In this document: positions 9,911 to 24,032 of the stretch, in pieces
How positions within the stretch are numbered: position 1 is the first letter of the stretch
Layout: the number at the start of each line of letters is the position of its first letter
Origin: Zygnema circumcarinatum SAG 698-1b
Lineage: Eukaryota; Plantae; Zygnematophyceae
Assembly: GCA_037447605.1 (NCBI GenBank)
Contig: CM074815.1
Location: 1 to 64,000 of the forward strand
Direction: 5' to 3'
DNA: 64,000 nt
The notes under the pieces: generated by a model
Seen by the model: the letters and a program-made list of their open reading frames with translations, nothing else
Told to the model about the DNA's origin: nothing
The model's database searches: none
Made by a program: the position numbers and the translations under genes

Positions 9911-12804
9911 CTGCGCCTCCCAGTACAAGTTGATGAGCTCCTGGCGTCGTTAGTTGCCTCAGACTTCCATGTGTGTTGGACCCCAGTCACCCGCGCGCTC
10001 GAGGTATTCATGACGGGAAGCCGGTCCTTCTCACAATGCGGTGGGCTTGAATGGTTTGACTTCATCTTTTCAAAATTACACCTTCAAAACCCACTGGTCA
10101 AGAGGTGAGTTGGGATTCCTTCCAGATAGATGCAGTGAGTCTTTCGCAAGCAGGCGTGAAGACCGAATGGCCCCTTCATGTGGGATGGTAGTGCCGGCCT
10201 GTAAGCGACGTGGTTGATTGGGGCTCCCGACCTGAAAGGTCCGATGGAGCGGGCCGCGGCCTGCGGTGTTCCACCATGAGCTTAGGTGTGGGTCACGTAC
10301 TTAGCAGAGCACCTCATCAGCCTTCATTGAATGCTGAGTTGGGTGCAGTGGCAGTCCACATCAGCTTTTGTGAGCGGCTGGGCCGCTCGCAGGCCTTCAT
10401 CCTGTAGCGCCTCGGCATTCATCGGACAAAGCCTGGCTTATCAACTTAGATCCCATAGGTGCCTCTCAGCTTCCAAGGTCGAGGTTTCTGTGGGCCATCA
10501 TGTTGGCGATCGGCTAGCCCCTTGGTTGCAGGGGATTTAGAGGATGCTGGCCAAAGTTCAGGAAGAAAGGGGTGGTACCAATGGACTCCTGGTAAGCATT
10601 ATTGATGGCATACTCAGCCACTGGGAGCAGTTCGTCCCACCCATCCGGGGTAGGTCCCACATAATGCCGGAGGTAATCCTCCAGGATCCTGTTCACCCGT
10701 TCCGTCTGGCCATCGGTTTGCGGGTGGAAAGCTGTACTCAACGCCTGCTTGGTCCCAACGATTTTGAGCACTTCCGTCCAAAAATGGCCGGTGAATCGTG
10801 GATCACGGTCAGACACAATTTCTGACTGAAGACCATGCTGGCTCCACACTTTGTCAACATACAACCGTGCAATCTCGTCGGCCCCAGCGGTCTTAGTAGT
10901 TGGTGCAAAATGCACCATCTTGCTGAGCCGATCGACAAAGACGAGGATGGAGTCATGCCCCCGAGGTGTCACAGGAAGATCTGTGATCAAGTCCGTACCC
11001 GCGCTGCATTGCAAAGGGAGTGTGAGGGGTTAGCTGCAGGGATCCTGCAATCCAGGTTTTGTTCGTGACAAGTGGGAAGGCGACTACGTCGCTTCAGCAT
11101 CCTCGAAAGTCAGCCAGAACTCTCGAGGCGTGCTCGCGGGTTTGGCAGCCCCCGTGTGACCTCGATCGGGTCATGGCTCGCCGGAGTGGATCAGGTGGTC
11201 CGGCCTTGGGCACGACCAACTGCTGGCCGTGGTACCAGAATCCGTCCTTAGACACCACTTTGTCCTTATAGCCATTACCTTGGCCATCCAGGAACAAAGG
11301 ATCACCAGCATACCCCTCCCGAATCATCTGTCTGAGATCAGAGAGAGCAGGAGGGCCGACTGCGTCGCTGGCGCAGGGATCTATGACAAAGCATGCTGGA
11401 GGACGGACTCGATGGCAAGCCACTCACCTGTCGTGTGGATACCTCAACACTGGAGTCAACGAGCGCACCAGTGGCAGGGTGCCGACTGCCTCTCAGTGGG
11501 TCTGCTACTTTCAGCCTTCCGGGCCGATAAACCCACTGGCAGTCAAACCTTTGGAGGAACTCAGACCAGCGTGCCTGCCGCCTAGACAGGGTCTGTTGGG
11601 TTGAGAGGAACGTTAGCGCGGCGGTGGTCACTGACCAGCGTGACCGCTTTCGCCCCCTCTAAATAGCACCGCCATGTCCTCAAGGCGTGGACCGCTGCGA
11701 GCGGTCCTGTCTGTTGCACAATGGTTAGGCTCCGCGGGATTCATTTTGCAAGAGCTTCGTGTGCCGATTGGCATCCTGAAACAAGCGACAACCGGCAACG
11801 AACCCCGAACATCACAAACCACTTCATAAGGCTTGGACGGGGACCGGCTGAGCAAAAAATCAGTGCGTAACGGGCGTGGCGCACGCCTTCGGATGAGTCC
11901 CTCACATTCGGGTCCACTGTAAAAGGACGCCGACGTACCGGGGCTTCACAAGACAGCCCGGTTTGCTAAACCCTTCAAATGAACTTACAAAAATAATTCG
12001 CAAAGCCCAGAAAAGACCTCACCTGGTGCAAGTCAGTCGGTGGCGCCCAAGTTTCTACCGCGGAAACTTTGGCAGGATCAGGTCGAAGACCCTGATCATT
12101 GAGGATATGCCCAAGATAAAGCAACTCACGTTGCATGAAGTGACACTTCTTCCTCTTGGCATAAAATTGGTGCTTCCTCAGGGTCTCAAACACTTTCGAA
12201 CGTGAGGAGTGACATCCTCTGTCTTCCTGGAGACAAGGATGTGGTGGAGGTGAGCCAAAACAAACTCGTCATGCAAAATGGAGCATTCCGTCATGGCAGC
12301 CTGGAAGATTGCGAGCATTCAGGGTCAATGCAAAGGCAATGCCTATCTGGAAATGACCAAATCGCATCCAGAAAAACACATTTTGGCACGTGAGCTTCCG
12401 TGACACACGATCTGATGGCTGTTCCACCTAGGCATGATGCAATGAAGTAAACACTCTCAGCAACCGTGAAGGCGATCGCAGACATGATGCGGTAAAGCAA
12501 AACGGTTCTTTATGGTGATCTTGTTGAGTGCGCGATAATCAATGCACATCCTTAACGAACCATCTTTCTTCCCAACAAACAAGATGGGCGCCCCAAAGGG
12601 GCTCTGACTGGGTTCTATCCAGCCCTTTTCACGTAAAGTTGCCAACTGCTTTCGCATCTCCTCGGTTTCTTTCGGGCTTAACCGATAGATCGGCCGCCAA
12701 GGCGGCTTTTGCTCAGGCTCAAGAGGGATTGTGTGCCCCACTCCTCTAGATGGTGGCAACCCTCTTGGAAGGTCGTCAGGGAAAACATCCCTGAACTCAT
12801 CCAA
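9911..12804 (-). pseudogene. Ty3/gypsy pol (RT-RNaseH-integrase-chromodomain) with frameshifts, stops and a destroyed RT active site
   Basis: RT segments [27 protein letters not shown]...[32 protein letters not shown] and FETLRKHQFYAKRKKC...YLGHI...RSFLGFANY. Integrase core DLITDLP...VDRLSKMVHF...IVSDRDPRF...STAFHPQTDGQTERVNRILEDYLR, then IGPF...INHVAYRPALP. The YLDD position reads HLHH (12241-12252). Confidence 0.92.
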
Positions 12805-13120: not shown

Positions 13121-14050
13121 CTAAGCTGCTGGTGGGTTGGGGTTTTCCGGCCCCTTGCCCTTCTTGTCCTTGGTGTTCAGAGGGCAATCACGGGCCTTGT
13201 GCCCCTCCTTGCGGCAGCGGAAACACTTGTTCTCCCGCTGCATCTTCTCCATTTCCTCTGGAGTCAACTTCTGCGGCCGTGCAGTGGGTGGGCGGGCAGC
13301 CACTTCCGGCTGCTTCCGCTTGTTCTTTCCTGCCAGTTTGGCAGGAGCTGAGGGTCCCGCCTTCCACGACCCTGTCACGTCGCCCGACCTCTGCTGGGGT
13401 CCGGAAGGGCCTGCATTGCCTGCAGGGGCGGTGTCCAACTGAATGGCTGCATCAAAGTACAGCTTAGAGTGAGCGGGGTCCCACGGTTTCAGAGTCCGTG
13501 GGTTAGTTCTCAGCTGCTTCCTCAGGTGTGGCTTCAAGCCATTCCTGAAGTGGAAAAAGAACTCAGCCTGTCCAGGCTTGTGAGTGGTGATTTGGGGCAC
13601 CACTTGTCGCAGGTCTCGCAGAAACTGCTTGACGCTGCCGGTTTGGACCATGTTCTGAAACTTATCCCGGGCCTCCAAGCCGGGATCCAAGGCCCCAAAG
13701 TGTTTGATAAGTTCATCTCTGAACTTATCCCAATCGTCCCCAATCTCATCAGAGAGGCCCTCATACACACGGTATGCGGCTCCTCTGAGTGCTGGGTAAG
13801 CAAAGCTTACCCACTGGAGGGGGGGACAGTTGGTCGCAAGAAGGTAACCCTTCGTTTGACCCAACCACTGCTCAATCGAGCAGTCCGTGGTAGGATGTTC
13901 GCCCCAAAAGGAAAGAGGGGCCACCTTGGCCCGATTCCGTCGGGCATCCTCAGTAGGTTGCGGGGGAGCAGTCCGAGGACTGGGATCTCCTCCGCCCCCA
14001 GCAGCTGCCCCCGACGGGGGTCCCCCACTGCTGGGTGGTTCGCCACCCCC
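13121..14050 (-). CDS. Retrotransposon Gag (capsid plus zinc knuckle), open from the N-gap to its stop
   Basis: Retrotrans-gag-like FRDELIKHFG...EARDKFQNMVQTGSVKQF...FRNGLKPHLR, and the CCHC knuckle CFRCRKEGHKARDC. The frame stays open upstream of the listed ORF as far as the gap at 14051. Confidence 0.9.
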   Translation of the reverse strand, partial: GGGEPPSSGGPPSGAAAGGGGDPSPRTAPPQPTEDARRNRAKVAPLSFWGEHPTTDCSIEQWLGQTKGYLLATNCPPLQWVSFAYPALRGAAYRVYEGLSDEIGDDWDKFRDELIKHFGALDPGLEARDKFQNMVQTGSVKQFLRDLRQVVPQITTHKPGQAEFFFHFRNGLKPHLRKQLRTNPRTLKPWDPAHSKLYFDAAIQLDTAPAGNAGPSGPQQRSGDVTGSWKAGPSAPAKLAGKNKRKQPEVAARPPTARPQKLTPEEMEKMQRENKCFRCRKEGHKARDCPLNTKDKKGKGPENPNPPAA

Positions 14051-16681: not shown

Positions 16682-17406
16682 AGCCGCAGGCGACGAGGCC
16701 AACCTCTGCCTACGATTCAGCGGATACAGATGCGGCACCGCAAGCACGCAACGAGCAAGCGAGCAGGCAAGGAGGCCGAAAGCACACGAAGCCGCGAGCA
16801 GGTAGGTCAGGCGGCCGCCGCCGTACGGCACCCCCTTTATTCCGTACGCGTTAGATACGATATGGTACAGTACAGTACGGCCGGCAGGACGGAGGCTGCG
16901 ATGCGATTTCATGCCATGCCATGCCATCCGGGGGCGGGAGCGGGGACACTCGCATTCATCATGACGTGACGTGATGTGACATGAATTGCAGGGAAGCCCC
17001 GAGGGCGGGGCGGGGCGGGGCGGGGGGGCGGCTCCATGGACTGCAGTTTCAACGGCGGTCGCTGTCGCGGTCGCAAGGGCGGCCGGGCGGTCGGGCTCCA
17101 TGAGGGCGCCGACGTGGCGCCTGTGGGCAGCAGGTTGACTTTCGGTTGTACGGTACCGTACCCAACTCTCGGCTTGGTCGTGCCTCGCGCGGTACGGCGG
17201 CTGGCTAGGCGGGCTGGGACGGGATACAGTACTGAAGGAATTGGGACCGACCGAGCGAGCGAGCGAGCGAGGAGGGGGCGAGGGAGGGCCCGGCCCGCCT
17301 CGCCTCGCCTCGCCTCGCGTCGCGTCGCATTGACGGGACATCATCGCATTGTGCGAGCGTGCGGGTGTGCATATGTTCAGGCTGGCGAGCTGCTTGGCTT
17401 GGGATA

Positions 17407-17441
<35 letters not shown>

Positions 17442-17466
17442 GCGGGCGGGACTGATTGAAAGCGCC

Positions 17467-19087
17467 ATGGCAAGGCCTGCGCGCGCGGCGCTCCTGCTTC
17501 TGCTTGTGTGCGCGGGCCACCTAGTTTCCACGCATGTTCACGCCGCTCCCAGTAATCGCCTCACTCTGCTGGCTTTTCAGATTTTTTGGGTATTTATGGA
17601 TTTAGAGCTTCCGGAGCTGCAGGACTGCGATCAGAAGCATGCTTTGCGGACTGTAAATTTGAACGCAGTCGAAATATTTTTTAGCGGAAATGTGTTCACC
17701 ACCTGTCAGACGTTTCTTTTCTTGTGCGTTCCGTGTCGCACTTCCCGCGTGCGCAGTCATTGGCGGTTGTCGGTACAAGAGGTGAGGTCATCAGGAAAGT
17801 AGATGCTGAAACCACCTGTGCCTGACTGAACTTCTTTTTCCAGCTATCACTGTGTTGCAGGAACGGCGCCCTGTTCAAGAGGCTCCGGCTAAATCGGATG
17901 GTTTCGCAGCAGAGGATGCTGGAAGGTTTGAAACTAATGAAAAAAAGTCAGAGGCAACGTTTGGAAGACAAACAAATGCTGACAATAATGAGTCTTGGAT
18001 GGAGAAAGTGGATGGCTATGAAGATGCCGTTGCAGAAGAACGGGTGACCGAGGATACGGAACCTGTTACACATGATTATGTTGAGGCTTCAAAAAGATGG
18101 AACGTCCGCGAAACCCATCCGGGTTCTGCAGCTGAAATCGGCGGAGATACTGAGCGGTGCCTAAGGAAGGCCAGTGACTTCGCTACTGCATCCGAGGACG
18201 GCGAGGGCGTGAAGGTCGAGTTTAAGGGGGAATTCGGTTTTGAGCTGATGGCAGTGATTCCTTTCGCTTACTTTCACTTTCTCAACGGAAGCCTGTCATT
18301 GACAGTCACTTGTGGCGATCCCTCCGTGTCGCTCTACTACTGGTTCAGTCCGAACCACCGCCATGACTTCAGCTGCCAGCGGGACGACCAGAAGAACGAC
18401 ATCAGTCCGTACGGGTGGGCGGGGGGCCTGCACTGGAGCAGCATCCCCGAAGCGTGGTTCCCGCCGCCCCTCGCGGGACGCTTCCGCGAATGGGGGAAGG
18501 CCTGGCTGGATGTTCCATCCGGGGCAAAGTTTGTCATCATCTCCAACAAGTTCTCAAACGAGTGGGGGAGGGGTCCTCTGAACCTCATTGATCTTGTTAC
18601 CTTGCGCCGGTTGGTGGAGATGTTCGTCCAGGCAGACTACTATGTTTTGTACAACAGACCGGGAAACCTTCTGAAAGAGGATCCTTGGCAAGCCATGGAC
18701 CCCGACAAGCCGAACTCGAATCGCTTTGACGACTACAGAGTTATTCGCAAGCTCTACTTGACTGAACCGTACGGAAAGCGAGTGAGGCTTATGCAAGACC
18801 TTCAAGACAGCCATCCGAGTGGGGTTTCATTCAATGAGATCCAACTGCGAGCAATGTCGCGAAGCAAGTGTTTTGTTAGTGTCCAGGGAGGCAACAGTAT
18901 CCTTTCCAGCTATTTTGGCGGCACCAATATTGTCTTTGTGAGACGGGGTTTGGAGCTTCATGGCAAAGCGTATAATCGCTTGTACACGCGTTTGTCGGGT
19001 GCAAAGGTCATAGTTGCCCGGAACTACAGAAGATTAATTCATCTTGTGCAGCAAATGATCCATAGAGAGGACTGTGCAGCGATTTAG
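17467..19087 (+). CDS. Secreted or type-II membrane protein with an acidic stem and an intronless, putatively glycosyltransferase-like (bacterial/viral-type) C-terminal domain
   Basis: Signal or anchor MARPARAALLLLLVCAGHLVSTHVHA. Exon(s) 17467-17652 (an optional in-frame 54-nt intron at 17552-17605) splice in phase 0 to a 1.2-kb exon at 17861-19087. Motifs: FKGEFGFELMAVIPFAY, IISNKFSNEW, VLYNRP, NEIQLRAMSRSKCFVSVQGGNSILSSYFGG. Confidence 0.75.
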
Positions 19088-20188
19088 GTTGCTCGTGTTG
19101 CTTGAGGACTTTTGATTGTAAATACCATGGACAGGCCGAAAGTCATGTAGCTCGATTATTTCAGGACTGGGATCAATGTGATAGTGATGACACGAGTCCT
19201 GTCTTTTGCCCTGTTCGTCTCAACGCGCAGAGTGCAGTGGAAGGCCACGTCAAGTCTGATGACGTTCGTTGCTGTCACTGGAAGACCGCAATGTCTTTCT
19301 CCGCGTCGAAGGAAAAGTAGAAGGTCCAGTATCACCATCAGGGTGCAGTGAGAAAAGCTGTCACATAGGGATCAACGACGTGCCGACAAATGCCTTTGTT
19401 TCCAGTGGCCCTCTCATTGTGCTGCTGACGACTTTGATGTGCAAACGGTCACAGGGCATAGCATGGCTTGTGTTTCGAGAGGGCAGCGTCAATGCGCGTG
19501 TCTGCACAATTTCTCCGATACAGACGTCGTGCGAAAATCCTACTGCAAAAAAAAAAAAAAAAACTTGTCGAAAGAAGTAGTAATTACATTCTGCTGCGGT
19601 TTACCGTCAGCCAAAATGACACACATCCCCTTGACTGGCCTTGAAGGATGGAGGGCTGTGATGGCCTTGCCACCCTCCGACCATGCCGACTCTACAGTAG
19701 CCATTTAAAACGTGCTGGCCACGTGGACGGCTGAGTGGATTGAACAGGACAACGAAAGACGGAGAAACACATTTGTTTCGTGTTTTTCTCCTTTCCATAA
19801 GTACAAGATACAGCAATATGGTACATTATTTTGCAGGACAGTTGGAAGGTGCCAACTGTAAAAGAATAGCCAAGGATATTCCTTGGAAAAAGCTATGTGA
19901 ACTTCTGCAACCCTAAACAAGACATGTAAGCAACAACTTTCTCGTGGCTGACGGGCATGTGCGGAGCCAGCCACGTGACAAGTGAAAACCACTTATTTTC
20001 TGCCTGAAGCCGGAGATGTAGAGGCATCAGGTTGTGGAGTTCGAATACAAGCTCGTAAAATACTAAGGGGGGGCGGACGGACGAGGGCGCCGTGAACAGC
20101 GCGTGCGCGTGCCGGGGTGGCCGGCAGCGCGCGCTGCAAAAAGTCAGAAGGGGGCGGGAGGGGGGGGGGGGGGGGGGGNNNNNNNNNN

Positions 20189-21640: not shown

Positions 21641-23465
21641 CAGGCAGTGGGTGACGGCGCAGCCGCGGCTTGCGACTGGGCCGCTCCGTCTGCAGGCTTC
21701 CCTCCCCTCTCCTTCTGCCGCCTCCCTCTGCCGGAGCGGGGTCTGCCCATTCCGCAGTGTTCTACGATCCAGGGGTGCACTGCAAACGACACAAGAAAGG
21801 GCGGTCAATAAACGGCCAAGCGGACGCACGTTATCTCTCTACTGTACGCTGCCTCCCTCATCTTTCTATTCGCAGTTCTTAGCCGACACTTCCAATTATG
21901 AAGGCCTATTGAAAAAAGCAAGCTCCCCTCTTTTTAGAGGAAGTCAGGGCCTGGGGGGCCAGGGCGGCACAGACACAGAGAGAGAGGGTGAGAGAAAGAG
22001 GGGGGGAGGGAGGGAGAGGAGAATGGGGAGGGAGGGAGAGAGAGGAGAATGGGGGAGAGAAGGAGAGAGGGAGAGAGATTAAGGGGGAGGTGGGGGAGCG
22101 TGGCTAACCCTTGATCTGAGCGAGCGTGATCCGGCGAGTAACGTCCCTCGTGAGCATCTTGGCCACGAGGTCTGCGGCGCCGGGCGAGAGGGTCTGCCAA
22201 GCCTCCCCCGCGAGGTCGAGCTCGGCCGCCTCCACCGCGCGCAGAATGTCCTCCATCGCGTCGCCGGCGAAGGGCGGCTCCCCGCAGAGGAGGATGTGCA
22301 GGATCACGCCCAAACTCCAGATGTCCGCCTCCGGCCCGTATTCACCTTCCAGAACCTCGGGAGCCACGTAGTACCTGAAAATGGCAACTGTGTTAGACCG
22401 GCGCTGCTCCAGGAGGGAGTGAGGAAACGTCTGCAGGGGGAACTAACACTATCAATAAGTGCACAAGTGCACTTACGGAGTCCCGACGCATTCCGTAAGC
22501 TTTTCACCTGCAAGCACAACGCAAGCACAAACACAGAAGCCAAGAGGTCAGCATTTCAACGGCGCGTATGGGTGACCCGGACGCATCAGCGGTTGCTGCT
22601 GCTGCGAAACCGATGCGGCGCGCGGGCACTAACCGGGCGTGAAGAAGGCGCAGTGGCCGAAGTCCGCGAGTTTGACGGCGGTGCGCGAGCCCGCGTGCAG
22701 GAGCAGCACGTTCTCGGGCTTCAGGTCGCGGTGCGCGATCCCCAGCGCGTGGCAGTGGCTCAGCGCCGACGCCAGCACGCGGCACACGACGGCCGCGTCC
22801 GCCTCCGCGTACCGCCCCTCCGCCGCCACGCGGTCAAACAGGTCCCCCCCCCGGCACAGCTCCATCACCAGATGCACATCCTGCACCGCCCGAGAAGTAC
22901 AGCATCAGAGCAGCCCAGCCTGTGCCACAACACGAACTTCTCAAGGACAGGCGGTCAACCACAGCCATGCTTTATCACGAATCGGGATCGACAGAAAGGA
23001 GTGCGTGCAGAGGGCTAGCCGTACCTTGTCATCTTCCACGACATTGCGTAGACGCGCCACTGCGGGGTGTGTGTTCACCATTCCCAAAGCGCACACCTCC
23101 CGTCGCAGCTCCTCCGGGGAGCATCCCCCGTCCTTGGGAATGCTCTTGCAGGCGAGGACTTCTCCCGTGCGGCGGTCCGTGCAGAGGCGCACAACGCCGG
23201 CCATGCCCTCTCCGAGCTGCGCGCCAAGCGAGTAGCGCTGCGTGATATCCTCTCGCGGCAGGTTCAGCACGCGCAGGGGGGCCTGCGCCTTGGCGCGTGC
23301 AGTCGCGCCCATGGCCGCCTTGATCTCACCACTCACACGCGCTGCGGAAGTGGAGGTGGAGGTGGATGTAAAGGTAGAGGTGGAGGTAGAGCTAGAGGAG
23401 AAGGTGGATGTGAAGCCGATGCAGGGCTCTTTACCGGAGCAAGCCATTTCCTCCCTGCCGGCCAT
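21640..23465 (-). CDS. Ser/Thr protein kinase of the CDPK/CRK/PEPRK superfamily, lacking a calmodulin-like domain
   Basis: [12 protein letters not shown]...LACKSI...[56 protein letters not shown]...PPF, HPWI, then a short tail and TGA. Exons 23025-23465, 22634-22880, 22477-22507, 22109-22374, 21640-21779. Confidence 0.93.
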
Positions 23466-24032
23466 GGCCGCGTGAGGGCGAAGGCGCGACCTGGCGGCGG
23501 CGCAGGCGACGTGGCCCGTCCTCTCCTCTCGGCGCGGGGCGGTGCCGCCCGCGCACGCCCGCCCCTCGCGGCGCCACGTCGTCCCACGCGGCTGGCTGGG
23601 CCACGTGGCTGGCCTTCCGGCGGCCACCGCGACCGGCATGCAGCGCCGGCGGCCGGCACAACCGTCCCGCCAGCTGGCGCCACCCAGCCGTACCGTATCA
23701 TACGGCACCGTACGCGGCCGGTGGGGCGGCTTCATTGAAGGATGCTCGCGGCCACGTGGGTCACTGTACGGCGCGGGACCCGCGGGCGCGGGGGGGCGGG
23801 TTGTTGCCGCTGTACGGCTGCACGGCTCGTCTGTACGGCGAGCGGCGTCCCAATTCCGCGCGCGTGGCCCGCTTCCCTCCGTCGAAGAGCCGTACCGTAC
23901 CGTACCATGCCGTACCGCCAGGAGGGACGACGGAGAAAGGTCCGTTAATCCGACACCAAAAGGAGAACCTTACAGTACGGTACATATCCGGATGCAGAGG
24001 AGTACGGTACGGTACTCCGCATGTGGCAAATT

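Follow-up and report, generated by a model that had tools for sequence, protein, structure and literature searches.

Introduction

The closest described structures to the protein presented here are the heptosyltransferases of glycosyltransferase family 9 (GT9), such as WaaC, WaaF and TibC (PF01075), which are compact enzymes made of two lobes in the GT-B fold. The same general fold is found in GT61 (DUF563; PF04577), the family of plant XAT/XAX1 and of animal EOGT and POMGNT2. Type-II enzymes of the eukaryotic Golgi expose a short tail to the cytosol, are anchored in the membrane by about 17-22 hydrophobic residues that are not cleaved off, and bear their catalytic domain on a stem in the lumen. 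Here we describe a gene of the streptophyte alga Zygnema circumcarinatum SAG 698-1b located at 17467-19087 on the + strand of positions 1 to 64,000 of contig CM074815.1 (assembly GCA_037447605.1), the stretch of DNA that was analysed as a whole and that we call the window. The gene is nuclear, expressed and spliced, and its two exons encode a 442-aa protein of the secretory pathway. The large family to which its domain belongs is named in none of the libraries tested (Pfam, NCBIfam, PHROGs and PDB sequences). We lean towards the view that the product is a nucleotide-sugar glycosyltransferase of GT9-like fold residing in the lumen of the endoplasmic reticulum (ER) or Golgi, and that it comes from an old eukaryotic clade begun by an ancient transfer.

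The domain has a modelled GT-B fold closest to GT9

The exon-2 product served as query for the searches and fold comparisons, and the joined 442-aa protein was analysed for length, charge and hydropathy. The domain (18209-19084, + strand) comprises 292 aa within one exon and was delimited by its structural model, the GT9 structure matches and conservation. The AlphaFold2 (AF2) model, computed with a 21-sequence alignment, has a pLDDT of 90.4 and a pTM of 0.90 and contains two Rossmann-like lobes; as modelled, the domain fold is a two-lobed GT-B. When the model was compared with the PDB by Foldseek, WaaC and WaaF came out on top with a probability of ~1.0. An exhaustive VIA-align comparison also placed GT9 first (1psw, Z 15.6; 3tov, 15.4; 2h1f, 14.6; TibC, 13.2), with other GT-B families at Z ~10. 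A second VIA-align look returned GT9 heptosyltransferases as all of the top eight PDB matches, at Z 13.4-16.1 (1psw, 16.1; 3tov, 15.4; 2h1f, 14.6; 4rap, 13.7). A glycosyltransferase-like reading is thus supported by these matches. It had been proposed in a first-pass annotation made from the letters alone, which likened the C-terminal part to the nucleotide-sugar-binding half of GT-B enzymes; the model and its GT9 matches bear out the GT-B fold, and the modelled fold is thus glycosyltransferase-like, as that proposal required.

Among predicted structures the nearest ESM Atlas models were unnamed Bacteroidota clusters (template modelling (TM) score 0.82-0.84) and phage clusters (0.80), followed by GT9 (0.67). 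In a feature search of the Atlas the matches were for the most part unnamed clusters dominated by phages, including one with PF01075 in 30% of its members, and the best match in BFVD was an uncharacterised Terrestrivirus protein (E 3e-15, TM 0.77). The same GT9-like fold was also encountered in a subunit of the plant chloroplast NADH dehydrogenase-like (NDH)-photosystem I (PSI) supercomplex (7wff chain a, 9grx, 7f9o; Z 11.8-12.6); the PDB profile searches found no sequence relation between this subunit and the family.

Scans of NCBIfam and PHROGs found no family assignment. The sole row obtained in the Pfam, NCBIfam and PHROGs scans, a match to XopAV in the stem (E 0.037), was discarded as chance, and the ribosomal L9, interferon and UPF0217 entries returned by the PDB profiles were spurious. 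A full-text literature search, in which the word match for 'GT9' also caught GT90 and similar terms, turned up no account of GT9-like enzymes from streptophyte algae.

The family spans bacteria, phages, giant viruses and a few eukaryotes

A word-index protein search led to the identification of 25 relatives. The closest, at 54-59% identity, are unnamed EukProt transcripts and Logan/ENA contigs, followed by many Closterium proteins (42-46%), Chlorokybus (38%) and about seven metagenome proteins of 285-402 aa (26-35%). When 1.84 billion cluster representatives (clusters at 50% identity) were searched with a profile, 1,033 matched at E<=1e-3, of which 412 also reached E<=1e-30. Many members are stand-alone proteins of 250-320 aa and many others reach 500-1,100 aa; when ten of the long ones were scanned, seven carried other transferase domains, namely GT2 (five), WbsX, and GT2 with a GT7C/GT64-like domain.

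In GTDB, 144 loci were confirmed. They belong mostly to Bacteroidota (Hymenobacter, Pontibacter, Dyadobacter, Spirosoma, Pedobacter) and otherwise to Opitutaceae, Pirellulales, Bryobacterales, Lysobacterales, Bdellovibrio and Lokiarchaeum ossiferum, so that they span Bacteroidota, Verrucomicrobiota, Planctomycetota, Acidobacteriota, Proteobacteria, Bdellovibrio and Lokiarchaeum. IMG/VR contributed 24 loci, among them giant-virus metagenome-assembled genomes (GVMAG contigs). The bacterial and viral loci found by tblastn are 20-34% identical to the window protein. The resemblance to proteins of bacteria and large DNA viruses that had been suggested at the outset proved real, in GTDB bacteria, in GVMAG contigs, in Terrestrivirus and in the phage-dominated Atlas clusters.

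Over its full length the window domain can be aligned with members from bacteria, viruses and algae (profiles A2 and A4). Across 87 diverse sequences, in eukaryotic members and others alike, about 30 positions reach a conservation of at least 85%, and all of them are intact in the window protein. The family-wide conserved residues are, in domain numbering, E8, F9, E12, P18, Y44, H50, N113, K114, E118, Y148, D158, N209, Q212, G227, G228, G238 and E249. Seven positions are invariant (Y44, R58, N113, Y148, N209, G227 and G228), a further seven are conserved in at least 90% of the rows (E8, E12, H50, E118, D158, Q212 and E249), all of these being present in the window protein, and position 114 is K or R in every row. 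The motifs first singled out by eye, GEFGFEL..P, NKFSNEW, YNRP and VSVQGG..SSYFGG, coincide with the most conserved positions of this large family.

Gene structure and transcription

An uninterrupted open reading frame (ORF) runs from 17852 to 19087 on the + strand. A search of RNA-type sequencing runs found the stretch in five runs of one organism, and contigs from three of them (X2, X3 and X5, all from one study) were aligned to 17000-19900. The contigs of all three runs show zero differences from the window sequence and lack an internal piece, establishing that the gene is transcribed and spliced, which the first-pass annotation had left to be shown. The contigs align from 17453, and the aligned part of the 5' untranslated region (UTR) is 17453-17466 (+ strand). 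About 38 further letters of these contigs lie upstream of 17453, within the repeat at 17240-17452 that was left out of the alignment; a (GA)n microsatellite read from the sequence at 17409-17439 lies just upstream of the aligned start of the transcript.

The coding part of exon 1 (17467-17551, + strand) consists of the ATG, 28 codons and one base and encodes the secretory leader; a leader of this kind had been predicted at this place, and the ATG at 17467 is indeed followed by a hydrophobic one. The donor GT at 17552 is used in three runs. In the X3 contig (depth 240) and the X5 contig (depth 186) position 17551 is joined to 17844, which removes a 292-nt GT..AG intron of phase 1 (17552-17843, + strand), the only intron of the gene. 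The X2 contig alone joins 17551 to 17861 and so skips 309 nt; in this form the frame is shifted and a stop is met at codon 39. The two acceptors, both seen in RNA contigs, are 17 nt apart, the segment 17844-17860 (+ strand) being kept by the first and skipped by the second. Exon 1 has 85 coding bases and the frame is therefore kept only with the acceptor at 17844. The form using 17861 is a minor variant, an unproductive isoform or splicing noise. Thus the productive coding sequence is 17467-17551 joined to 17844-19087 (1,329 nt, 442 aa), and the gene model proposed earlier has to be amended in two respects: the leader is interrupted by one intron instead of several, and the productive second exon begins at 17844 and not at 17861.

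Exon 2 opens with an acidic stem of low conservation (17844-18208, + strand; ~122 aa), recognised by its composition and by its poor alignment among relatives, and continues through the domain to the stop codon TAG (19085-19087, + strand). The 3' UTR (19088-19515, + strand) extends at least to 19515, where X2 contig 4 ends, and downstream of it the genome has an A-run at 19547-19562. Just past the 3' end of the gene, from 19572 to 19900 and beyond, lies a separate and far more abundant transcript, with depths of 145-181 vs ~5 for the gene in X1 and 388 vs 142 in X2. The X3 and X5 contigs fuse the transcript of the gene with this downstream one.

Leader and stem

The leader opens with the n-region MARPAR, and its hydrophobic core, about 14 residues long, leads into VHA|AP. 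It is the single N-terminal hydrophobic segment of the protein, and residues 7-27 form the highest Kyte-Doolittle window of the whole sequence. Judged by eye, it looks more like a cleavable signal peptide than like a type-II anchor. The succession of leader, acidic stem and globular domain is that of the Golgi type-II layout initially suggested, whose anchor would be longer than this core; with VHA|AP after it, the core would read as part of a cleavable signal peptide. The acidity of the stem, also noticed then, is borne out by 29 D+E vs 15 K+R in its 122 aa. The stem contains one NES sequon, is probably disordered, and among relatives it is poorly alignable and variable in length.

Most labelled eukaryotic members form one old clade

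A tree of 87 rows was computed with IQ-TREE (LG+C20 PMSF, the posterior mean site frequency model) and left unrooted. The window protein groups with 21 other rows at a support of 100/99, and this clade of 22 comprises EukProt transcripts, all Closterium proteins, two Chlorokybus paralogues, Rhodelphis marinus and nine unlabelled metagenome/Logan proteins. Every labelled eukaryote but Diplonema is in this clade, and not one labelled prokaryote or virus; nor was any IMG/VR sequence found inside it when a viral donor was sought. Most clade members have a hydrophobic N-terminal leader, and the contig of one unlabelled relative has fragmented, eukaryote-like gene calls. In Closterium sp. NIES-67 the exons encode residues 1-29, 29-101 and 101-409. 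Leader and stem thus contain all of the introns, the first of which lies at residue 29 as in the window gene, and the domain is encoded in a single exon. Two cysteines, C35 and C56, are present in 22/22 clade members, and C221 and C289 occur together in 15/22; these cysteines are specific to the eukaryotic members.

Labelled eukaryotes were found only in the alga of the window, Closterium, Chlorokybus, Rhodelphis and Diplonema. The protein of Diplonema papillatum, DIPPA_05170 (P0028/P0175), is a euglenozoan protein of 1,033-1,146 aa with three tandem copies of the domain. It stands outside the eukaryotic clade in the free tree, and its joining the clade was not rejected (approximately unbiased (AU) test, p 0.318). 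A tandem arrangement was also seen in Closterium sp. Yama58-4, where P0003 (693 aa) contains the C-terminal part of one domain copy followed by a full second copy; this layout suggests tandem paralogues merged in one gene model. No second copy of the gene was found within the 64-kb window.

Since Closterium, Chlorokybus and Rhodelphis have orthologues, any transfer must be older than the split of these algae. The marks of a recent transfer are absent: the guanine-cytosine (GC) content of the gene is 52% vs 53% for the window, the intron is spliced, and orthologues are present in Closterium and Chlorokybus. The patchy distribution in eukaryotes vs the broad one in prokaryotes (144 GTDB loci in many phyla) is that expected of a transferred gene, and a horizontal origin is plausible but ancient. 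Of the initial proposal of a horizontally acquired gene fitted with a secretory leader, the transfer itself remains in keeping with this distribution. A fresh acquisition restricted to one lineage is not supported, because Closterium has the same leader, stem, domain and introns, and Chlorokybus and Rhodelphis have leader and domain.

Gene context of prokaryotic and viral members

The bacterial context of the family is polysaccharide synthesis. Family neighbours include GT1, GT2 and GT4 genes, the initiating transferase Bac_transf, sugar epimerases and dehydratases, UDP-galactopyranose mutase, an acetyltransferase and a polysaccharide deacetylase. Three homologues (P0020, P0022 and P0023) sit among GT1, GT2 and GT4 genes; one of these loci also has Bac_transf, GLF and epimerases, another has a polysaccharide deacetylase, and the Hymenobacter, Dyadobacter and Pedobacter copies adjoin GT2 or GT4 genes. 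UDP-galactopyranose mutase occurs in 5/5 loci of one prokaryotic sub-clade (L001, L009, L010, L035 and L080; flanks of 5-10 kb) and in the flank of the viral contig L085, and in no Bacteroidota locus among the flanks fetched. This linkage hints that the sub-clade uses galactofuranose. One of the five loci is that of the Asgard archaeon Lokiarchaeum ossiferum (L009; chromosome 4984130-4994921), whose member is identical to P0031 over the aligned domain; the UDP-galactopyranose mutase gene directly follows the family gene, and a NosD/beta-helix protein is encoded alongside.

Surroundings of the gene in the window

Remnants of a long terminal repeat (LTR) retrotransposon lie 3.5-7 kb upstream, at 10517-11014 (- strand) and 13124-13924 (- strand), and were recognised by an integrase core (rve, E 2.8e-6) and by gag (E 2.8e-8) with a zinc knuckle (E 2.8e-6). 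Downstream, the C-terminal part of the ORF 22944-23735 (- strand) matches the start of the protein kinase domain PF00069 (E 5.6e-8), and this ORF is probably an exon of a kinase gene on the opposite strand.

Discussion

We propose that exon 1 would supply a signal-type leader and exon 2 the stem and the compact 292-aa GT-B domain, and that the protein would carry out a nucleotide-sugar-dependent transfer onto a cell-surface glycan or glycoprotein in the lumen of the ER or Golgi. Donor binding would take place in the cleft that separates the lobes, with the N113-K114 loop, D158, N209/Q212 and the S-V-x-G-G...Y-F-G-G loop-helix as candidate contacts. The catalytic Asp of GT9 lies where helix 1 begins; by position and by analogy, the E8/E12 pair found there in the window domain would serve as the base, and the clade-specific cysteines could form lumenal disulfides. 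As to its history, one ancient transfer from a prokaryote or virus may have brought in the domain, a leader exon may then have been gained, and the gene may later have been lost in land plants or never have reached them.

A number of points weigh against this proposal, both in its function and in its origin. The whole family is without biochemical characterisation. No Pfam match was obtained for the 408-aa product at E<=10, PF01075 matched 0/21 aligned members at E<=1, profiles built from 21 and from 60 sequences found no true match among PDB sequences, and hhalign against E. coli WaaC, WaaF and WaaU gave non-significant probabilities of 0.3-0.7%; the sole stretch that hhalign aligned is the conserved VSVQGG...SSYFGG loop-helix, which it placed on VSVDTG...TAAL of WaaC. 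The GT-B fold also houses enzymes other than glycosyltransferases. The domain could thus transfer something other than a sugar (a glycerol-phosphate or a pyruvate ketal), be an epimerase or hydrolase of a nucleotide sugar, or be a non-catalytic subunit. UDP-GlcNAc 2-epimerases and NeuC at Z 11-12, a cluster of TagF-type CDP-glycerol glycerophosphotransferases in the Atlas at TM 0.59 and the non-catalytic NDH subunit (7wff chain a, Z 12.6) are compatible with this, and such modifying enzymes are present in polysaccharide clusters as well. We nevertheless consider it unlikely, given that true GT9 transferases fill the first eight places among the structural matches, that the fusion partners found are glycosyltransferases and that the strict conservation of acidic, Lys and Gly-Gly positions speaks against a non-catalytic role. 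That the protein is a very divergent member of GT61 appears a good deal less credible, and we give it little weight. Some bacterial members go by 'Glycosyltransferase family 61 protein' or 'Capsular polysaccharide biosynthesis protein-like' in UniRef, PF04577 matched one of 21 members below threshold (E 0.014) and POMGNT2 (8kb7) reached Z 9.1, but PF04577 was found in 0/10 bacterial members scanned at E<=10, the three so named included, the window protein has no Pfam match, and GT9 structures score far above the GT61 structure (15.6 vs 9.1). The UniRef naming is thus not reproduced by Pfam.

Regarding the origin, the node joining the eukaryotic clade to its sister has a support of 21/51 in an unrooted tree, and the direction of transfer is read from the breadth of distribution only. 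No land-plant or chlorophyte protein appeared in either word search, which were length-limited, or among the best 150 profile matches listed, in line with the initial failure to recognise a land-plant family. The gene might instead be an ancient eukaryotic one, of Archaeplastida age or older, that was inherited vertically with many losses, the bacteria and viruses having taken it from eukaryotes or the family predating their split. The eukaryotic clade does occupy one side of a strongly supported branch, the order of Rhodelphis, Chlorokybus and the group of Closterium and the window protein is compatible with the species tree, the AU test leaves the joining of Diplonema unrejected, and giant viruses have members. 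Against such vertical descent stand the far greater diversity in prokaryotes and phages (144 GTDB loci; 1,033 clusters), the handful of eukaryotic genera that carry the gene, the intron-free domain within intron-bearing genes of two distant algae and the position of bacterial members inside typical operons, and we regard it as rather improbable. A recent acquisition confined to this lineage, or a bacterial or viral contamination, is already contradicted and has next to no chance of being correct. The intron-free domain, the bacterial and viral homologues and the retrotransposon remnants 3.5 kb upstream could be taken in its favour. It is opposed by a GT..AG spliceosomal intron removed in RNA contigs identical to the window, by a base composition like that of the genome, by nearest relatives that are other algae (45-60% identity, vs 20-34% for labelled bacterial and viral loci) and by a leader and intron layout common to Closterium.

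A GT9-like secretory glycosyltransferase of ancient foreign origin would, if active, represent a sizeable and widespread family undescribed in Pfam, NCBIfam, PHROGs and PDB sequences, which spans bacterial clusters of the capsule and O-antigen type, phages and giant viruses. Early streptophyte algae would have carried a secretory enzyme of a GT9-like type not found in land plants, a candidate for structures that are specific to these algae, be it in the wall, the mucilage or glycoproteins. The gene would also offer a dated case in which a domain of prokaryotic or viral type was given a eukaryotic leader exon. No long-standing question is settled by this, and bacterial-type transferases are not rare in algae. 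A bolder proposal, which we hold to be a long shot, is that the family is a new glycosyltransferase family at the level of CAZy, whose eukaryotic branch makes an algal surface glycan absent from land plants. The donor might then be a furanose such as UDP-galactofuranose, because one prokaryotic sub-clade always lies beside UDP-galactopyranose mutase (5/5 loci). UDP-galactopyranose mutase is not known from land plants.

Comparison with known systems

True homologues of the domain are the members of the unnamed family in Bacteroidota, Planctomycetota and Verrucomicrobiota, in phages (Uroviricota) and in giant viruses, to which it is related over its whole length (E down to 1e-89, 26-37% identity), with shared conserved residues and TM scores of 0.80-0.84 for the Atlas clusters and 0.77 for Terrestrivirus. 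Unlike the window protein, the prokaryotic and viral members are mostly without leader and stem, and they lack C56 and the C221/C289 pair. Within the eukaryotic clade, the proteins of Closterium spp. (e.g. CLOP_g21912), Chlorokybus (Chlat1/5609 and 5288) and Rhodelphis marinus (m.13153) share leader and domain at 38-60% identity, and none of these orthologues has been characterised or named. Closterium has a stem, whereas in Chlorokybus the domain begins within ~20 residues of the leader; Closterium differs from the window alga in its many paralogues and longer stems.

Among described enzymes, GT61 shares the GT-B fold and is the weaker structural match (Z 9.1), without a Pfam match; a glycine-rich motif in GT61 is presumably only loosely similar to that of the window domain. 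GT9, of similar compact size, provides the best structural matches over the whole domain (Z 13.4-16.1, with 221-232 residues aligned at 3.2-3.7 Å). In the window domain an acidic residue opens helix 1 within a G-x-E-x5-P motif resembling the G-D-x5-P of GT9, and, as in GT9, a Lys comes after the first strand of the C-terminal lobe. At the level of secondary structure, E8/E12 and K114 would occupy positions equivalent to D13 and K192 of WaaC; the position of WaaC D261 is variable in the family (Q, H, L or E). In contrast to GT9, to which it has no significant sequence similarity (no Pfam match at E<=10; hhalign <1%), the window protein belongs to the secretory pathway of a eukaryote and has cysteines of the disulfide type, and its use of ADP-heptose is unsupported.

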